A stretch of 64,000 nt of DNA from Pavona decussata (lineage: Eukaryota), in contig CDRNST010000078.1 of NCBI GenBank assembly GCA_977016875.1, forward strand, positions 248,001 through 312,000, in the 5' to 3' direction. Each line of letters opens with the position of its first letter. Position 1 is the stretch's first letter. A program made the translations under genes and the position numbers. The notes under the pieces were generated by a model that made no database searches, was not told the DNA's origin, and was given only the letters and a program-made list of their open reading frames with translations. Positions 31,059 to 51,428 of this stretch are shown piece by piece.

Positions 31059-34000
31059 ATGGCGGCTTCCAGGTTGAACGCTATGTACGCGTGCGCTTTT
31101 CAAGTAGTGTCTTTGGCTTTTCACATCGCAGTTGCGAATGGTAAGATAATACTGTGACTGTAATTCTTTGACTTACATATGAAATAATTGGATCCAAAGG
31201 CGTACAATAGGCAAGAACGATCGTGCTTCATTATATTGAGTTTGTCAACTTACAAATTATAGCTTGCAGATTCGGTTAAAAATCGGGAAGAGAAGTACTT
31301 GCCTCGAATCCATTCAACAAAGAGTTGAAACTGAACCAGTTTAGACCTGATAAGTGAGAACAATCTGCGTGGTTTTTAGGAAAAGTAAAATTACCAAGTA
31401 CTTTTTTATCTCTAGACGATAAGACAACTGAAAAATTACTTTTATTAGTATTCACAAAACATCAATACATTGGAGAGAAAACGTTCATGTAATAATTATT
31501 AATTGCAGAGCTTCTTAGCTATTAAATTTAACGTTCGTTTAATTACCATTAACATGGTGTTGGTTTGTTAAGTCTTTGGAGATGAATATTCAAAATATGG
31601 TATCTTTAACTTTGGTAAAATATTACAATCGAAGGCCAAGAGCCGAGCGATCCAGGTGTTTTTGATATAAGTTTACTGTGGCTACCCTTCGATAATTACT
31701 TTGCTTTTTGAACGATCAGTTTTCGCATTGGAAGATCTCGGATACCTTGTTTAAAAAAAGCGATTTAATTAATTACCTATACCATGACGATTAAAATAAA
31801 TTGGTCGCTAATTCATTCTGTTGTCGGTCAACTTTTCAATGTACAGAACTCAGTCTGAGGTACGTTCTAGAAACAACAGCGAAACAATTAAACTTTAGGG
31901 CGTTTGAGGATATGAAAACAATTGCACCTGTAATTAAGACTGTGCAAGATTTAAATTCATGACTGATTTATCATTAGAACTGTTATGGATTGAGATCCCT
32001 CATCCAGGTATCAACTCAGTGTTCATTTCATTTTCTCGGCTTTACTCAATTTTAATGTTGGAAATTTCTTAGCAGCCTATTGACCACCGTCAACTACAAA
32101 CATTTGTAAGGCTATACCATGCTATCAGACAGAGACATAATCTACGCCGGCAAATTTCATTCACAAATTCTATTTCCACATTTTTCGTCGGTGTATGAAG
32201 AGCCGGTTCTTTTTAAGCTACTCAATAGTCTCAGTGGTTCATACATTCGTAAGATTTGACTGCTCAGTTTCATGACGAGGCTTGTGTCAGATGTTGAATT
32301 TATAGCAATCAGGCTCACTTTTTCTCTTGACATTAAGCCTGCTCACTGCTCACGGCCCGATACTGTTCGCTCTATCCGCTCATTATCCGCTGATTGATGC
32401 ATAGCCTTATCTAAATCTGCGTTATTATGTAAAGTTAAGTTTTTTTTTCTGTTTTCCAGCATGTTTGTAATTCACTGTAATTTTTTTTCCTTTATGTTCT
32501 CGTGCTCTTCTTGTCCCACCTCGACCATCTTTGTGGCTATTTGCGGGACAAGCCCCTTATGTAATCTGAATTTAATTTATAAATAAATTGTTGTTGTTGT
32601 CATTAAAACAACAATCTTGGCCAGACAGCCATATGGTGAGGTATGGCAGAGGTTGCAGACTTTACAGCTGGGCAAGGCCAAAAATATGTCCAAATTAGGT
32701 ATGATAGGGTTAGATCAAACCTAAGTAAGCAGTATTCAGTATGCAGGTAGATCTACGCTGCAATGCCTCTAAGCTCACTATTGGTCCCGTAATATTTGTG
32801 CTCAGTATTACAAATTTCAATATTCCTAGGTTGAAGGTCATAGTTTTTTTTCCAACTGTTATTCAATTGTCTCTTCACTTGTCTCTTCAAAAGCTCTGTT
32901 ATGAACTATTTGTAGCCGGTTTGGTTCCGCTGCCACACCGTTTGAGCCGTGCATGAAACGTTGCACGTTCTACTAGACTTCGTGGCAACCGTAAGTCCTT
33001 GAACTTAAATATCGCACGAACTCATCTGCACTCTTGACATCGCCTCCAGCTTAGTCAGGAAAAGCTAGAAATACTTACCGTCACAAACTGCAATTAAAAG
33101 AAAAAAAACCTACAAAGGAATCTTATGCTCCAACAAGAATCTAGTCTAACTGAGAAGCCTTGTGCTGTCCTCACGCCGAAGATTGTCCGTATATTGTAAT
33201 GTAGTTGGACAACCTCGTTAAAAACGACCAAATATTATGTTGTCAGATGAAAAAGAGCAAGTTTTGAACAGGCTTGTAAAGTACATCAAAGACAAGGCCT
33301 GAAGTCAAACGTGGGCGCTGCTTTGGTTGATTTGGAAAATGAATCGTTTGCTATTAGCCAATAGGAAGATAGATGTTACAATGCACAATGGGCTGAGAGA
33401 TCTCAATAGCTATCGGCCGAGATTACGACACGTCGAGTGTACAAAAAGTTACAAAAAGACATTTAAGTGCACAGTTGGGACGGTAAAATTTGTCCAAAAA
33501 AATTAACTGTAAAGTGAAAATTGCGGAATCACCTAACATTTGATTTCAACTTACCACCATCCTACTCCAAATCACACCCTCGCGAGACAGCAGCAACCTT
33601 CCTAAACCAAAGATATTTTTCTCTGTTTCGTTTCAGAGCATCTTTCACTCGACACGAATCTCACAAGGCAAGAGATCACCACTCTGCTTAACCATCGTGT
33701 CAATCTCGGTTGCTATGTGATCAAAACTAACTCGTCCCAGAATCCCACTTCACTGACCTTCGTCTGGTCAAAAGGAAATTCTTCTATCACGCAATCTCCA
33801 AGCAAAAGAATTCATGGTAACGTCCTCGTGGTGAAGCCAGAAGGCGATGAGGACTTTGGAAAATACGAGTGTAACGCTACCAATGGAGTATCGAGTATTC
33901 GATGCAGTATCCTGTTGTTACAAGGATGGAGGGTAAATGGTAAGTGTAATGTAAATTTGTTTTGATCATTAACTTCATCTCTCTCTAGGAAGATGTAATA

Positions 34001-35401
34001 TCCTACCACTTGCCAAATAAGACACAGTTCTCTGTCCGCCTTGTTTAATTCCTTCCCCTGCCTTGTTGAACGCATGAAGCTGCTTTCCGCCTGTTGTTCT
34101 TCATTCACTCAATTTATCCCTCTCTAACATATACACATGATTTCCAAGATGGACACCTATCTTTTATAGGGGTGGACACCTCTCTATAAAGATATATGAC
34201 TCCCTGTATAAGATGAACACATGTGGTTCACCCTGTTGTGTTCCAGGCCTTTTATTTGGACGCATGTAGCTGGTCCCTACTGTACCTCAGTCCAACGGTT
34301 AACTGGGACAAACACCTCTCTACTATAGACACTTCTTTAAGAACAATGCTCAAATGTCCATGGAGTTGACTCATTTCCCTCTATGGCAGACACAGTTGAT
34401 CTCTGTTGATCTTCAGTCCTCTACCCCTCTATTGTACGGTACATGTGGGGTATACTCCTGCTATACTCCAGTCCTTTCTTCTTCTCCCCTAATAAACACA
34501 ATTCCTCAAGAGAGACACGATTTCCCAATTGTTCTGAAGTCCTTTACTTCATCCTCTAAGAACTTGCATTTCTCGTTTTGTCATTTCAGGGCTCAAAACA
34601 ACGCCAAGCGCTGGCTGCGTGAACGTTTCAGTTCTAATGCCGGTCCTAGCTGTTGCAGTTCTGTCTTGTCTTTTGTTTGTTCATCTTGTAATCAGACGGA
34701 AGGAGCCCAAAGTCCTGTTGCCATCGCACAAGCGACGAAAATCTACGGTAGGCATAGCTCACCCACATGCAGAACAACGCAGCAGATCACGTGACCTGCT
34801 ATACAACCGTTTCGACAACGACACATTGAACAATAAAGAAAAGAAACAAGAGGTGGTTTCCATAGAGATGAACGTAAGAAGCTGTGTCTCTAGCCCAACA
34901 GATCGACCAGAGGATAATTGCGTCAACGAAAGCAGGCGGAAACGAAGATCAGGATTTTCTAATAAATCTTTTCGAGATCATTCTCTAGACATGGATGATG
35001 CAGAAGTTGGATCTCAAACGTCAAATGAGTCAAAGAATTCAAGCAGCGGAGTAACATCTCGTGCGTCAGAATTCTCAAGTGTTAACGAGAACAAGAAAGA
35101 TGAGCCGAATGGATTCTACAATAAAACCTACAAGAACGATTCCATTGATTACAGTGATGGTGAGCTCACCACACATCCAGTGGGGGAAACAGTGGGTGTT
35201 GACCAGCCCAAAGGAGGTAAGACAAAAGGCTTCATCAACAAAACTTATCATTCTGAATCTATGGATCTCGATGATGGGGAACGAAGCGCTCAAGCTTCTG
35301 GGAAAAGCGTGATTCCTGGTACCGCAAAAGGAGCCCAAGCTGCAAGCGAAGAACACAAGGTTGAAACAGAGCATAAAGCTTCTATGGAAACGCATTTTTA
35401 A
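31059..35401 (+). CDS. Single-Ig-domain type I membrane protein, paralog 1
   Basis: Exons 31059-31140 (leader), 33637-33939 (Ig: NLGCY...FVWSK...LVVKP..DEDFGKYECNATNG) and 34590-35401 (GCVNVSVLMPVLAV TM plus ~235-aa tail). All introns are phase 1 with GT/AG. Confidence 0.85.
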
Positions 35402-36001
35402 TCAATCTCGGACATAAGAGCCTGCGTTCCTTTTGGTCATCTTTACACAACTGCTTGTCAGGATGAAGTAAAATGGAGGCTCTGATTACTATATTTAGGG
35501 ACAACTTTATTTGACAAGTCCAGCGGTTTCATTTAAAATTGCTATTATAAGTACTCGATGAGTTTTTTAAGTGAAAAATCTTGTTAAAAATTAGACATCC
35601 CCGTCGAAATTTCTCAAACAAGTTGTCAATTGTTCATTGGAAAACCGCTAAATTAAGCTGTCGCTAGAAATAGTAGCAATGAAAAAGGACCTTTGAATAA
35701 TGGGTAACTAAGATCCAAGAATATTGCGTATTTTTTATCAGTTTCTTTTTAGCCACTAACGAAAACAGAATGGTTTACGTATGCTTGAAATTACTCGCGA
35801 ATTTCTTTGAATACTCTAATTAAAAATAAATTTAGATGGTAAATATGCAAAATACTCTTTCGCAGAGTTGCCAACCTCTAGACATCTGAAACTTCCGGTA
35901 CTCATGCCTCATCGCCGCTCCTCCCCCCCCCCCCTCCCTTCACCAAAGCAAATGACCCAAATCAATCCATCCCCCCCCCCCCGAAAAAACAAAACAAAAA
36001 C

Positions 36002-36647
36002 AGGGGTATCGAATGGACTTTGCGAGCAGTGTGTTTATTTTTGCGACCACGAGCAGTTGACAAATTTTTCTTGCGAGCAGCGAGCACTTTAAAAATACAG
36101 ATGGAAAGCGTCTTTAGAAAAATACAAATGGCGAGCGTCTTTAGAAAAATACAGATGGCGAGCGTCTTTAGAAAAATACAGATGGCGAGCGTCTTTAGAA
36201 AATACAGATGGCGAGCGTCTTTAGAAAAATGGCGAGCACCGAACACTTCGAGTACTTCGTAAATTTTCCGCTAGCAGGAATCTCTCTTTTATTTAAAATA
36301 GGATACGTTGTTTTGCGCCAAGCAATAGCTAATAATCTGGCTGACACCTCCAAAACAGAACAATAGTTACAGGCTGAACTCAGTTGAAGAAAGACTGAAG
36401 CCAGAGGTAAGGATGTTTCAAACTTTTTGTTTTAACCATGTCATGACTGATTTATCCTTTATATATGTATAAAATATAACTACAAAGGATCAGCAATTAA
36501 CGAAATTTCGAGCAATCGAGCACATGTTAACGAGCATGCGAGCAGTTCAAAAATTTTGCGAGCACCCGTGTAATTTTTGCGAGCAATTCGAGCAGAGGCC
36601 AAATTTTGTGAGCTCTTTTAAATTGAATGAGACCATTGGATACCCCT
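36002..36647. mobile_element. TIR element containing a 27-bp minisatellite (about 5 copies, 36092-36236)
   Basis: AGGGGTATCGAATGG ... CCATTGGATACCCCT, with AAAAAC on both flanks. Repeat unit aatacagatggcgagcgtctttagaaa. Many gcgagca subterminal motifs. Confidence 0.8.
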
Positions 36648-39324
36648 AAAAACTAAAAAAAAAAAAAAAAATTGACTGCTCACAATTTTCCTGCAAATTC
36701 CTGTTTCTTTTAGTTTCTCTTTAAACGTTTGTAACAAAATGGTGTACGAAATGCACCAAAAAACCCGGGAGATTTGGCATAAATGCTTTCGGTTTGCCTT
36801 GTACAGTGTTTTATGCTACATTTTTTATGGTGCAATACCCAATTGCTGTATCATTTACTGAGTGTGAATGAGGGGTATTTTGAAACAATTTATATTCCGT
36901 TCATGTTGTCCTTCAGCAGCATGGTTAAGAATATATGAAACTTCTTTTGAGGCCTTAAACGGCTGTTTAAAAGGTTTTACTTTTAAAAAGCAGTTTAAGG
37001 CCTCAAAAGAACAGTTTTATATAATTTATATTCCCTTAGAGATTTATATTGTAAATAGTTCCAGGTAAATATGGTGATTGTAAGCTACTGTAGTAAAGGG
37101 GTTTGATTATTCCAATAAAGATAACTTTAAAACTACCAATTTTTTTGGGTGACAATTTTTATATAAATAACTAAGAAGTTGTGAAATATATAAAGTCGGT
37201 AGCTAATTCAAAAATATGTTGGATGTAACTCTTTTAAAGGTTTGTAATTTTTTACCAGATCTTTTATGCTCAAAGAATGCGTCATATAATGAAGGCTTTA
37301 AGTAATTTTGACTGAATTTGTGGATGAATGATCTTTGTGTGAATATTAAAATAAAAGCTACTGAGCAGTATTTTACTCTGGTACTGATTATTATGCTGTA
37401 TAAGGTGGTTCTAATGCTTGAGATTATGAATGAAATCCTAAAGTGTGACAGTTCAAATGAAAGCTATTGGGCAATACTTTCCTGTGGTGCTATTTATTAT
37501 GCTGTATAATTTGGTTCTCACTGAAGGTAAGTTTGTAGTATCGTCATCCAATTTACAGCCAAACCTGTCTTTAGGAGACGATTGTGGAAAATCTGCAAGT
37601 GTTCGCATCAGATACACGGCCACTGCCACTGACCAAAGTTGAGTCTGAACACAGGTGACGAGTTTTGAATGTTAACATAATTTAACATATTAAATTTTGC
37701 GTCGTTTTACACAAACAATACCAGTATATATTCGGTTTTACAATGAGTGTTGCTCACGTCAAGTCTAGTTATAGGAAAAAAATAATCTACACTTAGCATT
37801 AACCAGTTGTTCCTTTTTTTCTTGTCTCTCTTGTAAGAGGGTCATCATGTTAAATTTTGTTTCTGCTACATGACAAAGGTATGATAAAATAAAACATTGA
37901 TACTGTGCTGCCATAAATATCTGATTCGGCGTAAAATTGTCGCCACAGCCTTTAATAGAGACTGCTTTCAAGTTTATGTATTTTATGCTTAAAATATTTC
38001 ATAATTTGTCAACTACCTTCTAATATAAGCTGTGTTTATCTTTATAGAGCTTGTTAGAATATGATGTACATATTCTTTAGATGCTGTTCAATAAAACCCA
38101 AATTAAGCACTTATTAAGTTGAGGGAGAATTTGCCATAACTATGCAAGGATCAAATGGATGAACAATCGATAAATTCACCTACACGGTACCTGAGTTCTT
38201 TCCAGCTGCCTTCAGTCCCCTTCAACAGTCGTAAAACATTTGGAATAGTGCTCACAACCATTTTACACAGTCTCGTGATCAACGAAACCCCGAGAAATTG
38301 AAATGACATAAGAATCGCTTGGAATTATCATTAATACAGAAAACGGTTAATAAAATGCACTATTAAATCATAAAAGGCAATCAAACTTATGAAAGAAGAG
38401 GTTTATAAGTGATATTGATCTAATGACTTTATCCAATACTGACACACTCTCGACCTTGAAATCATTTTGAATCATACCGTACATGCTGTCACTTGCCAAA
38501 GCTCGTTGTGCTTACCTCAACCTATCCTCTAGGGGTCGCCATTTCTCCTGACTCTACAGAGGGGGTAGGGGGATCTCCTTCGGAATTTTTGAAGGGAGGA
38601 TTTTACTGATCTAGATAATAAGATTTTATCTCTTCTAGCCAAGAAGTAACGACAAAAAAATCATATCTTACTCTAGTAATCTGTAACATATTTTTTGACC
38701 CAGAAACGGCTCAAAAATTTCACAAGCTTTGGCCCCATACAAACCTTCACAGCGTATATAAGAGACCACCCCCTTCGGGCGACAGGCTAAATTCACCGAT
38801 TTGTGATTTGCATGCATATGCTTATTATGATTTTGATTGATTAACAAGTACACCAGAAAAAATTAGTATAATGCTGTTAAAAAATAATCAAATTAAAAAA
38901 ACCTTGTTCCGACGCTAGTAGGCTTTCAAAAACGCGACGTTATAGTTAGTCCAAGTAATTTGAAACTAATAATCATGATTTTTCCCTCCTGTTGAGGGGT
39001 TTCGCTACAAGAATCTATCTACTGACATGTAAGATTGTGATGCGTTAAAACTGACCACAACGGCTTGAGTAATATGTATTTAAGGAAGTAATATAATATC
39101 GATCTGCTTTCTACGCAAATTACGCGTATTAGTTCTATTATTAATATTACCATTAACAACCACACAGCGTAAATACAGCATGATTGCGTCTTTTGGCGAG
39201 TCATGAGCGGTGATTTAGCAAGATGGCTACTTAAGAAATATTGAGAAATATATTTGTACATGTGTCTCACTTTGTTTTTCATTATTTTATTAGAGTTAGA
39301 AAGCAAAGAAGGAAAACTGACATC

Positions 39325-42300
39325 ATGGCAAACTTGAGGACCTGTTTTAGCTGTGTGTGTTCGTTCCAAGTAATGTTTCTCCTTGTCAGCTTGGCTGTAT
39401 GGAATGGTAAGCAGATATCAACCTAGTAGATCTAACCTCCTTCATACATTGACTGAGAGAACCAAACAAATTACGTTTATTATAACAAATGCCTCGGCAG
39501 TGTTTAAAGCACACAACATACCAATGAGAGTGAAAGTTAGAACATTATAAACAAATATTTCATGAAAATGAACATGGAAGCAGACCAGTTGGTTATTTAA
39601 AAAAGTTACTGAGGGGTTGATCTCAGGACTACACTATAAAACAACTCCGGTTAGCGGTCAGAGCAGATGGAACCCGGGACCTTCGTATTTCGTTCGGTGC
39701 CCTAACAACACTCCTTGACACTGCTCCCACATGGAGGTAGATTTTACGCGGATTCTGGCCATGGTTTCTCGGGGACCATGCAAGGGAGCTGTCTTTGATA
39801 AGAAGTTGTCAGTAATTTCTGTAAAAGTAGAGTTTTGAGCTACTTTTTGTCTTGTTGGGATCAAGGCAAGAGTTTCAACGACAAATGGTCTCTTCAGCAT
39901 CAAATAAAATAAAATGCCCCATATTTAACGAGTCTCTACCGGCCAAGTAAACCGTCTTATCCTTAAGGAGCGGTGTCCGAATTATAAATTAAGGAAAAAA
40001 GGGTTTACTTATAGCGACGGATTCAGTTGTGAACTGAACTGTTGAATTAATTTTAAGGTACATTTGGATATTGTTTATCTACAATATAGTAAACCTATGT
40101 TGGTAGCAAATCAATGCATCATATTTCGTTAAAAGGCCGTTTAAGTTAAGTTAGCAACCAGCTTTCACCGCGTGTCAGTGCATGTCCTTGCCACAAGGTA
40201 ACTACAGGCAATTTCTCTTGCCTTTCAACAACGTCAGTTAGGTATAAAGAGCAAGATACACGTTGTAAAACTTGGTTTCAGTTTTTCAGTTCGAATCGGT
40301 TAAGAAAATGTTGAGTCTCCGACGGCCAAGTCAAATACCATGACCTTTCGCGAATGTCGGTCGAATGTTCTAACCACTGAAAAACAGGGAAACTCGTGGT
40401 GAGCTACTCATACACTGATCCTGCATACAATCGAAATTGTTTAGGAGTCTGTCGTCATCATTGTCATTGATCATGCTAGGAACACCATTATTTTACCTCC
40501 GCTTCTCTTGAATTCCTTTCTTTTTGAAGTATGCAATAGTTCAGTTTTAAAGTGGAGTTGCTGTACGAAAACAAAAATATTCAAAGGTCATATATAAAGG
40601 TGGTATGTTGGTTCAACAAATTGAAAGTTAAATATAGTTAACAAAACTTCTTCTTAAAGTATTAAACAGCCGTCAGTGTTGACAAGATAGCGTGAACACT
40701 TACCTCAATGACAATCTCTAGGCTATGCAAGACAAACACTACAGGTTTAAAACAGTACGGGAAGACTGTCCTTTACTATCTACTAAAATCTATTCAGTAT
40801 AAAATGAAAAACAAAATTACTTTCATTTATCCCTACCTCTTGGAACTGGCAATCAATACCACTTTTTAACGTTGTATTGATTGATTGTTAGTGAATGTTT
40901 TCGTTTAATTCTCTGTTAATTTTCCGTGTAAATGTGATTAAATTGCAATGTTCTTTTCTGACAATATAAAATAGTCTGAACTTGTTTATTGTTGACTTTA
41001 GGTAATAAACGGACCCCGTTTTTACCTAACCATGTGTCCCACTGTGCACATGAAAGACTTAGAGCAACTACGTCACTCTTAATGCCTCTTACACGTAACA
41101 AAGAGCGTAAATTTCATATTTTAAAGTTCTCCCTCCATAATCTGTCTTAGTCTTACTCCACCCATAAAACTTACAAAGACACCAGTTCTTTCAGGGCTAC
41201 GTTTACCATACAACTAGAAGAAAATTCTGTACATTGTGCTTGAGTTAGCATCTTAAATATTCTAATTGTGTTGTCCTTTTTTCCCTTGTATAAGCCGCAG
41301 AATAAAATACACAATATAGCATTGTAAGGTCGAGAAACGTAAAAGAGAATCAGTAACTATCCGTAAAGTTAATTACCCATAATTAATGGTGTACGTATGT
41401 CTGTAAAATATTGCACGCTTCAGAGATATGTCTACCTCATGTTAAACTCAACAAGGATCGTACTTAATCCTGATCTAGTGTGGTCGAATTCAGAAACAAG
41501 AATGACGATGAAATATCGGGTTATATTGCATCCAAGTGAAATTAGTCTCCAAACGTTACATTTATAAGAGGTAGTCAAATAGCTTATATTGAAGGTTTCC
41601 AGGAGGAATGTTGAGACGGCAGCAGCTTATCAGCGCTTAAAAGAGCGATTACTTGAGTCAACTTTACATGAAGTACCTCGTCTTTTAGAGTTGCTATTTC
41701 ATAAGCTGTCTACATTTATCAGCATTATGAAATACAAAAAAACCCTAATCTTATCACCTCCTGGCTTAGGCATTTTTTAAAAATAGTTAGTATTAGCAAC
41801 AATTTGTAAAAGACATTCAAGCAAACGGTGTTTGAGGCTGGAGGAAAACCTGCTTTACTGGGTTTGGAAACAACAAAGACTATGACGATGATGATAATTA
41901 ACAAGTAAACCAACGTGTTTAATTGAAAACCACTTTCCCTACGAGCAAAATGATATCCTTCATAATCTGGCTTGTTCCCGTCCCAGTGTAATCTTTTGTT
42001 CTCTGTTGAAAAACTCACGTTCCTTTTTCGTTGCCCATGGTTCCTTGTTGTGAAATAGCAGTGTTTTCTTTCTTTATTCACTAGATATTATAGGGAAATT
42101 GTAACAGGCAAATGATAAATTAAAAGATAAGCTATTTTGCTTCTTGCCAAATTTCCACTGATGTAACTCATAATTTCTTTTATTTTTTGCAGAGGCATTA
42201 GAACTTGATTTCAATCTTACACGGAAGGAAATCATAACTTTTCTTGGACAGAAGGCAAATCTCGGTTGCTATGCAACCAATACAAACTCGCCTTTGACTT

Positions 42301-43364
42301 ATTTCTGGACAAAAGACAATCAAACAGTCACGCAATCGTCAAACGTAAGAGCTTTTGGCTACCTACTTGTAGTCACGCCAGAGGAGGATAAAGATTTTGG
42401 AACATATGAATGTAACATCACCAACGGAGTGTCAAGTACTCGATGCACTATCTTGCTGTCGAAAGGCCTTAATAAAACAGGTAAGTACAGATGCACTGGA
42501 TGGATTTGTACCATTATTGCAACGCTCTTTGAGGCGTTCAAATCTAATCCGATCTTTCCACGTTTAGAGTGTAGGCTCAATTAACGGGAACAAGTCTAGT
42601 GTTTTGCTTCTTGTATCCAGATCTCCCACCGCCAGGATGAACGCAAGTGGGATCTGTCTTGTATCCTAACGCTGAATTTCTACAAATACTTTATTTGACT
42701 CGTCCATTACTTCCAACCGGAGATAGTGATCAAACCAATTACTGTGTCAAAAAGTGACAGTGATGTTATTACACTTTCTCCTTTTAGTAAGAAAACTTGT
42801 CATATAATACTTGAACCAACTGTTTTTCTCGCAATACATTTTCCGGTGGTTTACGCCAATTACAGATATTTGAGGTCGAGTGTTTGTTAGATCTAATTGT
42901 CCAGTTCAACACCTTAGGTTTAATTTACCACCCAGTTGAAAGACGCTCTAAACTTTTTTAAATTTCCTTTTGTTACAGAGAATGATGGGGGAAATTCCCA
43001 AAGTAAGCGTACGACTGGATGCGTGAACATTTCAGTTTTGATGCCTGTATTGGCTGTAGCAGTGATGTCACTCCTTCTGTTTGTTCATCTTGTAATACGT
43101 GGAAGGCCGACCTCAAAAGATCAAATGATAGCAAGAAGGATGAAACAAAGTGAGGAGACCAGCAGTCGCCAAAGCGAAGCAAGTACTTCTGTCATCGAAG
43201 AATCCATTGAAATGCATGTCAACAAACATTCGTCACAACCACCTGTCAATGGGCACGTGTCACGCTCAGCTATTAATGAGCACGCGTCACACTCGCCTGT
43301 CAACGAGTACGGGTCACAGCTGCCAAACCAGGAAGCTCAAAACAACAACGCCACACAATTTTAA
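39325..43364 (+). CDS. Single-Ig-domain type I membrane protein, paralog 2
   Basis: Exons 39325-39406, 42193-42480 (NLGCY...YFWTKD...LVVTP..DKDFGTYECNITNG) and 42979-43364 (GCVNISVLMPVLAV TM plus ~90-aa tail). Confidence 0.85.
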
Positions 43365-45009
43365 GAGAAATGCTAGCAAGTCAACATGTGAACTGGAAAA
43401 ATTGAAAATTTAGAAAAGTCTGATAGAACCTCAATATCTATCTCCACAAAAATCCCTTATTGTTACGACAGTCAAGAAATAAAATGTATTCTCTTGGGAC
43501 AGTTAAGTTGGTCACAGAAAACTCTGCGGGGGCCTCGGAACGAGGACCTAGCACTAAGGCCCCCAGTGGCTAAGAGGGACAGAAGGCTCTGGTGACGAGA
43601 ATGACTCCATATATGGTGCGAATATATGACATCACATTCTGATGTCATTCTGATATTTTAGCCCACACTCCCCTGACAAAACGCTTTGGGCTCTGGGGCC
43701 AGCTGCAAATTCTCCGTAGTTAACTTTTTTTTGTATTTCTTGTACGTTTGTATCGTGCAAATATCAAGGCACTGGAGAATGTAATTTTTGTTGACGGCAG
43801 CAAAAAATCATGACTCGCACAAAAAACAAAACAATACTACTCGAAATAATAACACAACTTGCGTATGTTTAGTTTATTTCGGCTGATGTCTATTTAAAAG
43901 TATGCAATAATTACAAACGTCAAAAATGTTTATGAATGTAACTACATGTAATGGAAACAGCTAAAAAATTAGGAAATTTAAGTATTTTCTTTGTTATGCC
44001 ATTTCGCATAATATTTCGTTGAAAGTTGTTTTTTTCGATTTGAATTCCAACTTGATAACAACTCTTTTTCTACAATACTGTAATGCTAACGACTCTTAAA
44101 ATTGGAAGAACTTGACTCTATTGATGTGTAAAAAATGTTAATTTTAATGTTTATCAATCTTTGCCTTACTAGAGCAAAAGCTGGAACTCTCGGTAGCAAA
44201 GGTCAACATTTCTAATTAAAAATCTTACAAGAACCTGCCAAAAGTCTAAGAAAAGGGCATTTTGAGATTCCCTGTTGAACTATATTTTATATAAAACACA
44301 TATGCTTGAGAAATAAGCAAAAACGGCCTTTCAGACTTCGAATATAAACTCGAGACTACCTAAAATGTTTCATTTTGACCTGACCTGTGTCAACTTTGCC
44401 GTAAGATCTAGTTTGTGATTGGAAACCAAAGATAACTATGTACTGCTAGCATTGTATTTAGAGAAAAATCATTAGTTGTATACGCGCAGGTGCTTCAATA
44501 TCACATCATCCACATTCATTTCGCGACGTAATCTTAACGCAGTTTCTCGCGCATACCTCGGAGAACCCCGCCTCCAACCCATCTCCTCAACCATCTGCCT
44601 TTACAAAACGTCACCTACAAAACGATTTTCGTTTCAACTTTGTCCTTGGCATATGGTTTTCAACAGCCACTAGATAAACAAAAATCAAAACACTCTCGTT
44701 CGCACGTTCAAAACCTTGTTCCTTTTCCCAATAAAGAACAACCTAATATAGAACTAACATTGTTCGACTAACCAACCAGATTGCTGGAAACTGAGTGACG
44801 TCAAAGAGAATCGATTGATCTCTAGAAAGTTCTAGGAATTGAATCAATCGAAATCCACGCCCGTTTAGCCAATCAAATTACTAACTCCAGCTCGTTTGGG
44901 TTTTGTTCGCGCGTAATAATTTTCAGGTCAAACGAAAGTCGTTGTTTCAGCGCCTAAAAATAAGCAGGACGTCATCTGATATTGGACTAAAACCACAGTC
45001 CTATTTTTA

Positions 45010-48000
45010 TCATTTTAAAACCGGTTCTTCTTTATCATTTTCTTCTTCAAAAGACATTTTCTCCATATAATGACTAACTTGAGGCTCTTCATCAGGTTCA
45101 TTGTCCTCGTTTCCTTGTTCAAAGTCCATTTTCTCCATATAATGACTAACCTGAGGCTCTTCGTCAGGTTCATCCTCCTCATTTCCATGTTCAAAGTCCA
45201 TTTTCTCCATATAATGACTAACCAGCGGTTCTTCGGATCCCTGGCTCACGGCTTCACCGTCACTTTCGTCACCAGGTAAGAAGAAATCTGCTATTCTTGG
45301 AGCCTGCGCTACAGCTGACTTGTGGTTTACATCGGAAGAAGCAGGCGTTTCTCCTTGGTGATCATCTTTTTCTGCTTCGCGAAGGATTTCTTCCAAGCGT
45401 GGGATCGCTTGCGTGCGCGGGCTTTCTAACACACCTGGGATGTCCTTCACATCCGGGCTGTCTTCCTGAACGCGGAGAATGTCTTCCAAACGTGGAATCT
45501 CTTGTACTCGCGGGCTGTCTAACGAGCGCGGACTGTCTAATGCAAGCGAACTGTCTAACCCGCGCGGACTTTCCATTGTGCGTGGACTGTCTGCGTATGA
45601 CTTGTCTTTCGCGATCGGACTGATTTCTGGCACACGAAGGATGTCTTCCAAACGTGGTATCTCTTTGTCGCTCGTGGTGTCTGATGATCGTGGGGTGTCT
45701 AGGGTGCGTGGACTATCTTGTGCTTGTGAACTGTCTTGTGTGCGTGCAACGTCTAAGTTTTCCCGCATTTCAATTTTCTCGCCTATGTGATGTTTTTCAT
45801 GTTCCACGATATGCTGATCAATTTCCTCTTTTTGTTTTCGTCGTTTCCTGAATCCACCGCAGCACGTTTTATTTTCCTTTTCTTCAATTTCTTCTTCCAC
45901 TTGCTCTGCATGATTCGCTTCTAAGGGTTCCTGGGCCATGTGTAACTGCAAAATGTCTTCTTCAGGGAGAAGCCATTGACGTCTCCGTCTCCACTGAACT
46001 AAGAAATGAATGTTTAAAAGAAGCGATACCATCATGACAGCCAGGACAGGCATCAGCACTGATAGATTTACACATCCAGTAACAACTCCAGGATAAGTTT
46101 GCGCTTCTGAAAAAAACACAAACACAAAAACGAACAAACTCTTAAAAGCGTTTGACACGAATGATGCTCTGTGATTAGTCACACGCGTGCGACCAACGCC
46201 TATGTTACAAAAATGCTTTGGCATGTGAGAATTTGTGAGAATCACCGAAGGCACACGAGAGGCAAGGAAAGGACACAAGAGAATCAGGCCAAAAGAGAGT
46301 AAAGATTTGGACTGTTATTGACTCTAGTTGTATATTGTAGTTCTAATGTCTTTCTCCTTACCAGTATTATTACATCCTGGACGCAAAGAAATACTGTATT
46401 TTGTACTAGTCCTGCCGTTGCTAACGTGACATTCATACGTTCCAAAGTCTGATTGTTTCTCTGGAGTTACTACAAGCGTGTTGTTATAGACTTTTATGTT
46501 TGATGATTGCGTGACGGTCACATTGTCCTTTGTCCAGGAATAGATAAGGGACGAGGAATTGGAGTGAGTCGCGTAGCAACCGAGATTTGCTGGCTGACCG
46601 AACGAAGTTGTGACTTCTCGTCGTGTGAGGTGCATGTCAAGTGTTGGGCCGTCTGAAAAACAAAACAAAGTCAAGTCCACGATCAATAGCTTAGGCTATG
46701 TTCACACTACACCAGCTAGCTTTTGTGGTGGCACGATACCAGATTATCCTTTTGTTCACACATGATACTATAACAATGGCGCAATTTTTCTACTGGAGCG
46801 CTGAAGCACCGCTCCGATTTCGAAGGTAGAGAACTTGGTAACGGAAAACTTTCGTATTCGCCTAATTAGCAGTGTGATCAGGTAACCGGATCGGCACGCC
46901 TACTAATTTTGTGCGGCAGGAAACCTATCCGGCTAAGGGCTACGTTGTGCCGTATCTGTGTAAACATCCAGACATATTTACCTTTGCTGATCCCTTCCTT
47001 TATTCTCAAGACCTGAATGTTTGATCAACTAATGACGTTGTAAGGAGAAATTTGATGCTGATCATTATTATCATTAGCGTTGAGAGTCCAGAGTCATTTG
47101 TCTCTACAAACCTCTTACAGTTTCTACCACGTAAAACTTCTAGTCCTTCGAACCCAAAACACACAAACCGGCTTTCCAGGATTTACCGAACCGACTGAAG
47201 AAAGCTTTAGGGTCATTTTAAAAAACTTAACGTTTTAATTTTCTAGTTGTTGTTCAGCCAGAGAGTCAGAATAGGGTCTGTTTGATATTTAGTCCTGTGT
47301 GAAAAATAAATGACAATTATCAGGCAGTAAAGACATTAATAAAAAAAACAATAAGATGCAAATTATTCTGCTCAACGATCACCTTCGGTTGATTTCACAT
47401 GCCATTAAAACAATTAGAAGGAGCAAACGATAGCTCGAAATACACGCAAACTGTATTTTATCGCCTTAGTTTTATCAAAAGGCTGTTATCCATTCTAATG
47501 ACCAAGTTAGGTAAGATATTTTTCACCGGAGGCCCTTAATGCGTTTCTTTGCTTCAGAGCTCAAGGTGGATCGATATCGCCTTTTTGGGGGCATTTCTAG
47601 AACAATTTGTTTTGGCACGAAAAACAATAAAGTATTTCAGCTAAAAAAAAAATTATGTTCAAGTTTTTTCGAATTTTGCCTACCAAATATTTACTTGGAA
47701 ACCGGACATTTTTCCTGTTTCCAGTTGGAAGATTATTTTACATTACAAAATATTCATCACGGATGAAGTGATTTGAGGTTGACGTAAGAAAGCAAAAAGG
47801 ATTACAAAATATCTATTTTACATTCTCCTCAAGAAAGAAGTTGAGATTAAGTCACAGAAAGGTTAGCTTAGAAACTTCGATTCTAATCAAACACTATTTT
47901 AGAAAATTTAGATCTCCTGACCATTCCGCTTCTAGAGGACAACAATTCTACGTTTTCTTGGGCCTGTGAAACAATAAAGTGACCATTCAAATGAAAGCTA

Positions 48001-49547
48001 CAGAGCAGAACTTTCCGTTGATGCATTTTACAGCGGTAAATGTTAGCTACACCGTCTTTCGAGTTTGGTGATTAAATTAAATCCTTAAGTATCACAATTC
48101 ACATAGAAAATACAGTAAGAGCTATACTTCCAAGTGGTCCTGTTTATTATGCTGTATGAGGTGTTTCTAGCTTTTGATTGTAAAATCCTTACGTGTGACC
48201 ATTCAACTGAATGAAAGCTACTAAGCAGTACTTTCCTGTGGTGTTGTTTATTATGCTGTACAAGGTTGGCTTCTAACTTTTGAATCACACTTTAGGATTT
48301 TATCCACAGACTCAAAAGTTAGAACCACTTTGTAAATGATTAAACAGCACCAGCTGACCTTGAACAACATGCCGCTAGCCACTGTGGTCAGTAAGATGGT
48401 ACACCTGTAAGTTTTATTTTAGCATACATTGGTCCTCTTGCTTCGCTGAGTGAAGCCCAAACAGGACAAACACCGGCAAGAACAAGGTAATAATTTACTA
48501 AGAATCGAGGTAAGGATCCCGTAGCATTCCTGGCTTTTGGAAAGAGAGGTTTTGATTTGAATGGCCACACTTTAGAATTTCATCCACAAAAAAGTTAGAA
48601 CCATTTGTCGCATTAAAATAAACAGCACCATGAGAAAGTGCTGCTCAGTACATTTCACCCACAGTACACCGACCATGTACATTACATATCTCAGAAATCA
48701 ATTTTAGTGCACAGAACAATGGAAAACTTGAAATAAATTGAAGTATAATTGTAATGAGATTCTAGCCATCAAAACTTGAGCTTAAAATATTGTTCTTGTA
48801 TCTTGTTCACATTGCAGTTTGTCGCCCCAATATAGAGCCCTAAAACCCATCACCACATCTACATTAGAACAACAGTGAACAAAACCTATTTAATTTCATC
48901 GTGCTTCGCAGAAAGCCTTGGTTTATATGTTTCATATATTCATAACAGAAAGTATTGGTTAACATTTAACCTAAGTTTCCTGATTCCTGACGATTGGAAG
49001 AAATTATGTTACGTGTTGCTTTACAATTTTTCAGATCCAATTTTGGCAAGATTTCCGCACAGCCTCATACGTACATCAATTATACATATTTTGCGACTCA
49101 AACGCTATTCATGCTCGTTCTTCGTGTAAGAGGGTTAGTATGACAGTGATGTAAAGTGATGTATGTAAAACAACAATATTAATGTATGGCAGTATGGGAC
49201 TATGCGGAAATCTCTCCCAGGTTTTTGATTAGTCTCGAACTAATATCTCTTGATCACGATCGATACACACAGATATTCCTCAAGAGGTCAACACACAGCA
49301 GCAAACATATCGAGATAAAAAAAAATGCTGATGAACTGCGCTAAATCGGTTAAACAGTTTGAGTTTGGTCTGTATCAAAGGACTTCAAAACATTACAAAC
49401 ACGAACAGATTATGATGGAAATAAGGTAACTTTCTAAAAGATATAGCTTACTGATACCTACTTACCATTTTTAACAGCAAAGGTGACAAAAACAAGCATT
49501 CCTTGAAAAATACAAACATGCCAGAGACATGTCCATGTAACCGCCAT
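45010..49547 (-). CDS. Single-Ig-domain type I membrane protein, paralog 3, with a long acidic repetitive tail
   Basis: Exons 49547-49466 (MAVTWTCLWHVCIFQGMLVFVTFAVKN), 46652-46362 (NLGCY...YSWTKD...LVVTP..QSDFGTYECHVSNG) and 46106-45010 (GCVNLSVLMPVLAV TM plus ~325-aa tail). Confidence 0.88.
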
Positions 49548-50499
49548 CTTGATTCTTTGTTTATCACCTGAACTTAACCATTACGCAAATTTGTCCCCGA
49601 TTATAACTCTCAAAATCCCCAAAAGCCACCGTGATGGTTGAATTTGGAGAGGACTTTACATTAGGGAAATCCGAAAACCAAAAACAAGCAAACTAAAACT
49701 GTATAAAAGTTCAGCGTACTTCAGCGAACAAAGTAATCAACATGACGACGGTGTTGTGTGACCACTTGGCGCGTGACATGGAAAACTCAGCCCAGCTCTC
49801 TCTCGGACCCTCGTCACGTTTTTAAACATATAAATTGATCGAGGAAGAGTTACAATAATGGTCCGTTTTTCTTAACAATAACCCTACTAATACAAGGGAT
49901 AATGAACATTATTACATTTCATGTTTGGTTACAGATGACCAGGATGGAATTAAATTGCAACTGAAAAAAAAAACCCTAAGATAAATGGCCAATTTTTAAA
50001 ATTTCTTCCGGGATTTCTTCTCTTTAGTACTACGAAAAGCGCTGAAACGTACTGGTCAATCTAGAATTGAAATCACCTGATATTTTCGTCTCAGGGCCCT
50101 ACTGAAGAGCTATTTCAAAGTTGAGCAAAGGCTGCTTGTCAGATATTTTGTGCAGTTTTGACCAAGACACAGCAGATCTCGATCTCCTCCGACAATTTCA
50201 CTCTTATCGTTACGGGACAGATTTTGGTGTTTCCTCACACCGACACACACTGTAGTTCCAGAGAACACTTTATTCCTTGTTTCTCAGTCCGACGACCAAT
50301 TGAAACAGTCCTTTTCAAGACCTTGTATTTATGTGATTTGACCACATTCATCATTTCACACATTTTTAATGGAAAAAGCAATATTGTCTTGCAGAATGGG
50401 GTGACTTCAGCTGTTCCCTACCTCCAGGTCATCAGCTTAATTACAATATTTTTTCCATTACAGTTGCGAATCAAGCTCAAATCAAACACATGTTTGGCG

Positions 50500-51428
50500 A
50501 TGTTGCATCACTGGTTCAAGCTCATGTTCTCAATTCCTCGACGAGAGCCGATGACGAGGACAGAGAAGTTCATTCAGTGGTCTTCCCTGGTTGCTTACTG
50601 TATCGGTGGCTTCTCCTTTCTAGCCGCCCCACAGTTATATAACATCATACTGCAACTGGACTACCGAGGACACTCCGAAGGATTCATACGATTAGTGGGA
50701 CTCGGAATTGTTGATGTTGGTTTGATATTCGTCGTATTGGCTCGTTGCGATCATAAAATATACCGGATGGGTACCATATCAGCCTCAACCTTTAGCCGTC
50801 TGCTCTGGGTACCGGCCAAGGGTCTGATGCTGATCTTTAGAGATATGTTACCTCTAGCATTTGCACTGATTTTCATGGCTCTCGATTCGTCCCTCTCTTT
50901 GAGCACCCTAGTGATTTGGTACTGTGAGACGGAAGAGCCTTCGTCTCGCGCCTTTTTCAAAGAATTACTCTCATTTGTACGAGACTGCCGTGGACTTAAA
51001 TCGGGAGGCTCGATCTTGGTGGCTTTCATTCTTGGTGTAATTCAAGTGATCTTTTGGTACGTCTTCGTGGTGAGGCCAGATTTTGCTCAAATAATATTCA
51101 ACCTCGATCAATTTGAGGGATTTGCCAGTAGATATTTGTCCACATTCATTTACCTACTCCAATACACGGCTTATATCACGTACTCTGCGCTAACAATGTT
51201 AACCGCTGCCTTGTGCCCATCTCTTTAAGCTATCGAGTCTTAATTGACCTGCCAGTCTTGCTAGTGCTGTTTCTTGTTGATCAAATTGAGAGAAATCTCT
51301 TTCTAGCAATACTGATTATTAATCTCCTAAGTGTCATCATTTTTCTATTGTCGATAGCAATTGAAAAGCGATCTAGGGAGAATACCGCAATCGACACGAA
51401 CAATGGACAAGACGATTCCCCTTTATAA
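50500..51428 (+). pseudogene. Uncharacterised ~8-TM membrane protein with intronless coding region, copy 1, apparent 1-bp frameshift at ~51159
   Basis: ORFs 50158-51228 and 51213-51428 join if one base is restored. Copy 1 reads ctactc-caatacac where copy 2 reads ctgctctcaattcac. Confidence 0.75.

Follow-up and report, generated by a model that had tools for sequence, protein, structure and literature searches.

What is a cluster of three genes that encode membrane proteins with similar outsides and dissimilar insides doing in the genome of the coral Pavona decussata? The genes, here called A, B and C, lie in a stretch of 64,000 nucleotides (nt) of the assembly GCA_977016875.1 (contig CDRNST010000078.1, positions 248,001 to 312,000 of the forward strand), which is referred to below as the window. 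A sequence-only reading of the window had likened them to the Alr allorecognition genes of the hydroid Hydractinia and to the paired receptors of vertebrate immunity. It had proposed an undescribed cnidarian receptor family in which one kind of ligand binding is wired to several intracellular outputs. The analysis reported here points elsewhere. The three genes are ancient paralogues within a family whose named members are so far all from stony corals, and we put at about even the chances that they encode dimeric adhesion or scaffold receptors of an ordinary immunoglobulin superfamily (IgSF) kind, each with a tail of its own. They do not resemble a variable recognition system of the self/non-self type.

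Gene structure, expression and family history

The trio consists of three 3-exon genes, A and B on the forward strand and C on the reverse strand (Table 1). When the whole window was scanned on both strands for leader exons (a start codon, an open frame and AATG/GTAAG at the end), exactly three sites came up, each of 82 nt and each encoding a hydrophobic signal peptide. The exons with the immunoglobulin (Ig) domain are preceded by AG and followed by GTAAG, and are sited 2.5-2.8 kb downstream of the leader exons. The last exons begin 255-650 nt beyond the Ig exons; near their start they have G-C-V-N-x-S-V-L-M-P-V-L-A-V in common, and little else. When the exons are joined, the frames are open for 398 (A), 251 (B) and 489 (C) residues, of which 12-25 make up the stalk. 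The shared architecture that had been described from the sequence, with its exon positions, phases, 82-nt leaders, single Ig exons and near-invariant block in the last exon, was reproduced throughout, and an Ig-profile search of the assembly found no further Ig match in the region of the three genes.

Are the genes expressed as modelled? To positions 42000-47000 we aligned contigs of four public runs, which come from four studies and at least three samples. The runs are called RNA-like on the ground that exons are covered and the introns between exons 2 and 3 of genes B and C are bare, the recorded run type being a guess. The joint of exon 3 with exon 2 of gene C (46106/46362) is present in 4/4 runs and, beyond 46653, the contigs of all four continue as the exact reverse complement of the last 30 nt of the gene C leader. 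The exon 2-exon 3 joint of gene B (42480/42979) is present in two runs (X1 and X8), and three runs continue from 42192 into the last 30 nt of the gene B leader exon, as checked against the window. Because the RNA-like contigs join the exons and leave the introns bare, genes B and C are transcribed and spliced from leader to Ig exon to last exon with no extra exon, at the joints modelled. The same joints rule out that the introns of B and C conceal additional Ig exons. A-type full-length proteins of 405 and 441 residues have been called in other corals on contigs that, at only 1,631 and 1,571 nt, can only be spliced RNA; RefSeq models have the single-Ig architecture too.

The contigs carry some further observations. 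Between the convergent stop codons of B and C lie 1.6 kb (43365-45009) with RNA-like contig cover, in two runs at a contig depth above that of either coding region; the stretch probably represents both 3' untranslated regions, overlapping or abutting, or else a further transcript or repeat. A contig of run X8 omits 66 nt in frame within the 27-nt repeat of gene B (43252-43319). Since the ends of the omitted piece (GC..CA) are not splice-like, it is probably a length allele of the repeat. In the Ig exon of gene B (42192-42476), run X8 differs from the window at 12/285 nt and run X1 at 2/228 nt, so that X8 could carry a divergent allele or represent a cryptic lineage. The Ig exon of gene C shows 0-5/292 nt differences between samples.

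The family is small. A profile of the three Ig exons, run against the 602-Mb assembly, finds only the three loci at E ~1e-50, with the next Ig matches at 1e-10, and a search of the whole assembly did not find the membrane block elsewhere. Orthologues were found by word-index searches with the last exons and a Montipora B-type protein as queries. A-type orthologues occur in Acropora millepora, Oculina patagonica, Desmophyllum pertusum and Porites harrisoni; B-type in Montipora foliosa, M. capricornis, Acropora cervicornis, Porites evermanni (whose protein is 53% identical to gene B), Orbicella faveolata, Oculina patagonica and Stylophora pistillata; and C-type in Montipora capricornis, Acropora palmata and Stylophora pistillata. 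In a maximum-likelihood tree of 44 Ig domains, the A-type (100/99) and B-type (95/85) sequences form clades that are sisters of each other (97/96), and the C-type sequences form a basal grade. Every type contains both complex corals (Acropora, Montipora and Porites have orthologues) and robust corals (Stylophora, Orbicella, Oculina and Desmophyllum), and the triplication therefore predates the split of the living stony corals. Thus A, B and C have one-to-one orthologues across the two groups. With three copies in the genome, each with its own orthologues in complex and robust corals, the trio is an old conserved family and not an expanding variable one. Its members are probably neighbours in robust corals also, as judged from identifiers that follow each other directly on the same contig: LOC111325661 (C) and LOC111325662 (B) in Stylophora, and ACROYT_G044141 (A) and G044142 (B) in Oculina.

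All named orthologues are labelled "uncharacterized", "hypothetical" or "Ig-like domain-containing". A literature search with six of their LOC or locus tags and six of their protein accessions found no paper, a general literature search on IgSF in corals returned nothing about this single-Ig trio family, and the Stylophora accessions are absent from the examined supplements of the Stylophora cell atlas (PMC8162421). The family thus appears to be undescribed, as had been supposed, and of a known kind, that of IgSF type I receptors. To call it cnidarian is too wide: the gene family is real, and all its named members are from Scleractinia. The nearest named relative outside corals is the third, membrane-proximal Ig domain of a Nematostella vectensis protein (A7RTW2 / XP_001637163), which scores 76 bits against at most 31 bits for generic Ig domains in the same local comparison. 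Its identity with the C and B exons is 41-43%, and in the Ig tree it takes the outgroup position. That protein combines an F5/8 type C (discoidin) domain with three Ig domains and a membrane segment, whereas the trio has one Ig domain; its membrane segment and tail are also different and lack the G-C-V-N...M-P-V-L-A-V block. Three unnamed exon fragments from ENA (P0159, P0168 and P0190) group with the Nematostella Ig domain, and their best match here is gene C (47% identity). It should be noted that Scleractinia is the range of the named members, and not a proven limit of the family: a deep profile search listed its best 150 matches, mostly giant multi-Ig proteins, with single-domain matches listed down to 79 bits, and more distant single-Ig relatives may lie below the matches listed.

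Which part of the protein has been kept most strictly? With 29 distinct full-length members compared, the commonest residue has a mean frequency of 0.28 in the stalk, 0.67 in the Ig domain and 0.82 in the stretch made up of the juxtamembrane cysteine and the membrane helix, so that no part of the protein is better conserved than the membrane segment. The segment is the same in A, B and C, has no Lys, Arg, Asp or Glu, and contains Pro, Ser and His. In the trio, 17/31 residues of the block are invariant, 12 of those 17 differ in codon and third-position identity is 0.35-0.61. Given the different codons and the low third-position identity, the block has been kept by selection on the peptide. Gene conversion, which might have spread a common block among the copies, is ruled out by the same 12 of the 17 invariant residues. 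The Ig exon is under purifying selection as well. The B and C exons are 57% and 45% identical to that of A, with 38 invariant columns, and the ratio of nonsynonymous to synonymous divergence (dN/dS) between paralogues is 0.23-0.26, at a saturated dS of 1.3-1.9.

Ectodomain, tails and a possible dimeric receptor

The Ig exons belong to the immunoglobulin superfamily and encode an I-set domain. All match Pfam Ig models (Ig_3, ig or I-set) at E 1e-6 to 1e-9. Exons B and C score 37.9-38.3 bits with Ig_3 (PF13927; cut-off 30) and 29.5-32.3 with I-set (PF07679; cut-off 23.7); exon A scores 27.0 bits with ig (cut-off 21.8) and 25.0 bits with I-set. The canonical Ig residues, with the cysteines of the B and F strands and the tryptophan of the C strand (C25, W43 and D72-F-G-x-Y-E-C78), are invariant in the trio. 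An AlphaFold2 model of a B-type protein from Montipora foliosa (P0082, with a 34-row alignment) consists of a signal helix, an Ig sandwich with a predicted local distance difference test score (pLDDT) >95, an unstructured stalk, a long helix (144-187) and a disordered tail. Foldseek against PDB and a PDB sequence search bring up the I-set domains of NCAM, Robo1, titin, contactins, LRIG1 and neuroplastin. Together with a search of the ESM Atlas, these searches gave only generic I-set/IgSF proteins and no specific family.

A homodimer model had been named as a check by the sequence-only reading. Residues 29-172 of the Montipora B-type protein were modelled as two copies in three runs, with three controls. 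The predicted pair passes: in every run its interface score, ipSAE (interaction prediction score from aligned errors), is 0.49, while the best control reaches 0.03, at least 89% of contacts agree between runs, and the pLDDT of the partner is at least 79. The mark used was reached by 21/30 solved homodimers and by 0/23 solved monomers. The modelled dimer is parallel, and is formed by the A'/B/E face of the Ig domain (L37, R39, I43, N51, V83, V86, V88) with the end of the G strand; contacts are also predicted between the two Cys138 and at L144 and L148 of the helix. The juxtamembrane cysteine is invariant and stands about six residues before the helix. The model lends modest support to a disulfide-linked cis dimer, and heterodimers among A, B and C are conceivable because the parts predicted to make contact are common to all three.

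The tails are of 235 (A), 88 (B) and 328 (C) residues, close to the earlier estimates of about 235, 90 and 325, and are as dissimilar as had been claimed: in profile-profile comparison of the orthologue tail alignments only an I-E-M block aligns (E 0.005 for A-B, 0.0014 for B-C and 0.09 for A-C). A Pfam search of the three tails gave nothing above noise. A regular-expression scan of the tails of A, B and C found no immunoreceptor tyrosine-based inhibitory (ITIM), activation (ITAM) or switch (ITSM) motif. Each tail is nevertheless conserved within its own orthologue group across the complex/robust split. A-type tails keep H-P-H-A-E-Q-R, R-S-R-D-L-L-Y-N-x-F and V-V-S-I-E-M-H, and have 3-7 copies of G-F-x-N-K-[ST]-[FY]...S-x-D. 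B-type tails keep I-E-[ML]. C-type tails keep W-R-R-R, I-E-M-Q and an E-P-V-L-K end, with 1-5 copies of P-R-[IL]-[AE]-[DE]-[FI]-[FL] and 1-3 copies of P-L-V-S-H-Y-M-E-K-M-D-F-E.

The proposal that the tails are independently repeat-expanded holds. Repeats do differ among A, B and C, and motif copy number differs between species. Gene C, for example, has a 72-nt repeat (45055-45235; 2.5 copies, 91% matches) that yields three peptide units where most other corals have one or two; a second repeat, of 18 nt, is sited at 45509-45592. None of the tails is free-running, though: each is conserved among its orthologues, and the expanded elements are conserved short motifs and not random low-complexity sequence. 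Overlooked at first was a C-terminal T-x-F common to A (T-H-F) and B (T-Q-F), a class I PDZ-ligand pattern. A T-[YH]-F end is present in 27/33 A-tail matches, and a V-T-[QP]-F end in 9/16 listed B-type sequences; gene C lacks T-x-F and ends in V-L-K. The gene A tail has also one Y-x-x-Phi and three hydrophobic-x-N-x-x-[Y/F] patterns.

Taken together, these features suggest the following picture. Each protein would be a type I membrane glycoprotein with a signal peptide, an I-set Ig domain, a short variable stalk, a juxtamembrane cysteine, a membrane helix and a disordered tail. At the cell surface the proteins would form parallel dimers. Three elements would hold these together: the Ig face (strands A', B and E), a disulfide between the two chains at the juxtamembrane cysteine, and the packing of helix against helix. 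Both homo- and heterodimers could form, the dimer parts being common to A, B and C. Each tail would offer a series of short motifs for docking: the T-x-F ends would tie A and B to PDZ scaffolds, gene A would add a sorting-type Y-x-x-Phi motif and 3-7 PTB-ligand-like hydrophobic-x-N-x-x-[Y/F] motifs, and the repeated P-R-I-A-D-F-F and P-L-V-S-H-Y-M-E-K-M-D-F-E motifs of gene C would serve partners of its own. That one ectodomain is wired to different outputs, as proposed from the sequence, is a fair hypothesis.

Several points weigh against this picture of dimeric adhesion or scaffold receptors. The pass of the homodimer model may be partly memory of Ig dimers, only 1/7 eukaryotic solved homodimers without an older solved relative having reached the mark. 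The model is alignment-free, and Ig domains are often placed side by side by prediction. Conservation at its interface positions is only marginally above that of the remaining Ig domain (0.76 vs 0.65, p = 0.056). Two B-type sequences end in H-K-F, and some gene models end otherwise; the PDZ, PTB and sorting readings are matches to short, error-prone patterns. At least two of the trio, B and C, are expressed, and gene A would be so on the indirect backing of A-type sequences in other corals. Lastly, an invariant membrane helix fits equally well with binding to a third, multi-pass partner.

The picture of dimeric receptors can be carried a step further. Disulfide-linked homo- and heterodimers with one ectodomain and three tails (PDZ-anchored A and B, motif-repeat C) would make up a combinatorial receptor system found in stony corals only, which we regard as a long shot. 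If true, it could serve a coral-specific task such as the anchoring of skeleton-forming tissue or the handling of symbionts; such a task is conceivable because the named members are found only in Scleractinia. Corals have many lineage-restricted genes of unknown function, few of which are small, conserved and easy to test, and the trio is a compact case. Should the predicted disulfide dimer and the PDZ-type ends hold, the trio would offer a handle on how coral epithelia organise cell-surface scaffolds, and a case from nature in which several outputs are coupled to the same ectodomain.

The features of the locus are collected in Table 1. Two more observations concern its surroundings. Between genes A and B, a 27-nt tandem repeat (36091-36230; 5.2 copies, 94% matches) carries short repetitive open reading frames on both strands. 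Just past exon 1 of gene C there is a 356-residue open frame (50158-51228, forward strand) that is rich in hydrophobic stretches and has no Pfam match.

Table 1. Exons, tails and the intergenic stretch of the trio, in window positions.
Feature	Position	Strand	Content
Gene A exon 1	31059..31140	+	start codon and signal peptide, 82 nt, AATG/gtaag at end
Gene A exon 2	33637..33939	+	I-set Ig domain, phase 1 at both ends
Gene A exon 3	34590..35401	+	stalk, juxtamembrane Cys, membrane segment (block 34613-34705), 235-residue tail, stop codon
Gene A tail			Y-N-R-F, I-E-M, three F-x-N-K-[ST]-[FY] units, C-terminal T-H-F
Gene B exon 1	39325..39406	+	signal peptide, 82 nt
Gene B exon 2	42193..42480	+	I-set Ig domain, phase 1 at both ends
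Gene B exon 3	42979..43364	+	stalk, Cys, membrane segment (block 43017-43109), 88-residue tail
Gene B tail			I-E-M, 27-nt tandem repeat at 43231-43318, C-terminal T-Q-F
Stretch between convergent stop codons of B and C	43365..45009	.	RNA-like contig cover
Gene C exon 3	45010..46106	-	stalk, Cys, membrane segment (block 46077-45985), 328-residue tail
Gene C tail			I-E-M, S-P-R / P-R-L-E-D-I-L repeats (18-nt repeat at 45509-45592), P-R-I-A-D-F-F, three V-S-H-Y-M-E-K-M units (72-nt repeat at 45055-45235)
Gene C exon 2	46362..46652	-	I-set Ig domain, phase 1 at both ends
Gene C exon 1	49466..49547	-	signal peptide, 82 nt

Other explanations of the trio

The main rival turns on the invariant helix. 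On this view the proteins serve a multi-pass membrane partner (a pump, transporter or channel) as accessory subunits, with the helix docking on the partner and the Ig domain and tail tuning it. Basigin, neuroplastin and embigin serve monocarboxylate transporters (MCTs) and plasma membrane calcium ATPases (PMCAs) in this way, and Nav-beta subunits serve sodium channels. We consider this role for the trio possible, though unlikely. Conservation peaks in the membrane segment (0.82 vs 0.67 for the Ig domain); the segment is invariant across paralogues whose Ig domains are only 45-57% identical, and it has been kept at the protein and not the DNA level; its Pro, Ser and His residues are typical of specific helix packing. 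Foldseek also aligns the Ig domain and helix to neuroplastin in the PMCA complex (6a69_B), and the leads from PDB and the Atlas include neuroplastin and basigin, but such matches are generic for an Ig domain followed by a helix, and the acidic membrane residue of the basigin family is absent. The long, motif-rich tails with PDZ-type ends fit scaffolding receptors better, and part of the conservation of the helix and cysteine may already be explained by the homodimer model.

A polymorphic self/non-self cluster like Alr, the lead taken by the sequence-only reading, now seems very improbable. Clustered IgSF membrane proteins in a colonial cnidarian do bring Alr to mind, as do divergent tails, which Alr proteins also have (PMC9546547), and there are differences between samples, of up to 12/285 nt in the Ig exon of gene B (run X8), besides the 66-nt in-frame skip in its tail. 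However, there are only three genes in 602 Mb against dozens of Alr genes, their orthologues are one-to-one across Scleractinia, and the Ig dN/dS of 0.23-0.26 between paralogues is that of a constrained domain. The ectodomain is one canonical I-set domain, without a V-set domain 1 or an Fn3-like spacer, and there is no ITAM or ITIM in any tail. In the Ig exon of gene C the samples differ at only 0-5/292 nt, which is ordinary for corals. A negative lesson follows: clustered Ig receptors with divergent tails are, by themselves, no evidence of allorecognition.

Outside the window there are expanded arrays that seem better candidates for variable recognition than the trio. Tandem arrays of stop-free, apparently single-exon frames of ~390-440 residues occur at G000:C162 (~1.62-2.09 Mb; ~30 copies on one strand), with similar arrays on C404 (26-122 kb), C86 (963-987 kb) and C331 (557-575 kb). 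Each of these frames matches two I-set Ig domains, with 27-32% identity to Nematostella P0112. Arrays of Ig frames of ~200 residues are found on C288, C36, C273 and C519.

Paired activating and inhibitory immune receptors with one common ligand-binding domain, in which the inhibitory member has an ITIM and the activating member a short tail and a charged membrane residue, are scarcely credible here: ectodomains are similar and tails unequal in length (88, 235 and 328 residues), but no tail has an ITIM, ITSM or ITAM, the short-tailed B has the same uncharged membrane segment as A and C with nothing to recruit an adaptor, and all three genes are old and conserved, with no rapid turnover.

The trio among known receptor systems

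Alr and the trio are both clustered sets of cnidarian type I proteins of the IgSF in which the tails have diverged further than the ectodomains. The Alr genes number dozens, in a complex of at least 11.8 Mb, and encode ectodomains with a V-set-like domain 1, I-set-like domains 2 and 3 and an Fn3-like spacer; the proteins are mostly invisible to Pfam and often have an ITAM or ITIM (PMC9546547). The trio fails each Alr feature tested, be it ectodomain architecture, ITAM/ITIM or a large, fast-evolving gene complex.

The basigin, neuroplastin and embigin proteins carry two or three Ig domains, and their membrane helix contains a glutamate that is conserved. They and the trio are small IgSF type I proteins in which the membrane helix is the best-conserved part, but the trio has one Ig domain and no acidic residue in the helix.

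In outline, the trio is like the vertebrate CD28/CTLA-4 type, which has a V-set Ig domain, a stalk cysteine that links a disulfide homodimer, one helix and a tail signalling only via short motifs. Common to the two are the single Ig domain, the membrane-proximal cysteine, the one helix and the short tail motifs. The trio differs in having an I-set and not a V-set domain and unrelated tail motifs, and its disulfide is a predicted one.

The trio is most like the small junctional or scaffold receptors of the IgSF, JAM/CAR/ESAM (CTX) and TMIGD1. These form cis dimers via an Ig face and have short disordered tails with a PDZ-binding C-terminus that connects to junction and polarity scaffolds. Both groups are type I IgSF proteins; in the trio the C-termini of A and B are T-x-F, and the modelled homodimer passes its controls. 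JAM, CAR, ESAM and TMIGD1 have two Ig domains (V + C2), however, whereas the trio has one I-set domain, and sequence kinship does not go beyond generic Ig similarity. The near-invariant membrane helix with its juxtamembrane cysteine is a feature of the trio and not of these receptors. In sum, the trio would in its workings stand nearest to the JAM/CAR and TMIGD1 receptors, resembles the CD28 type in outline, and is a member of none of these families.

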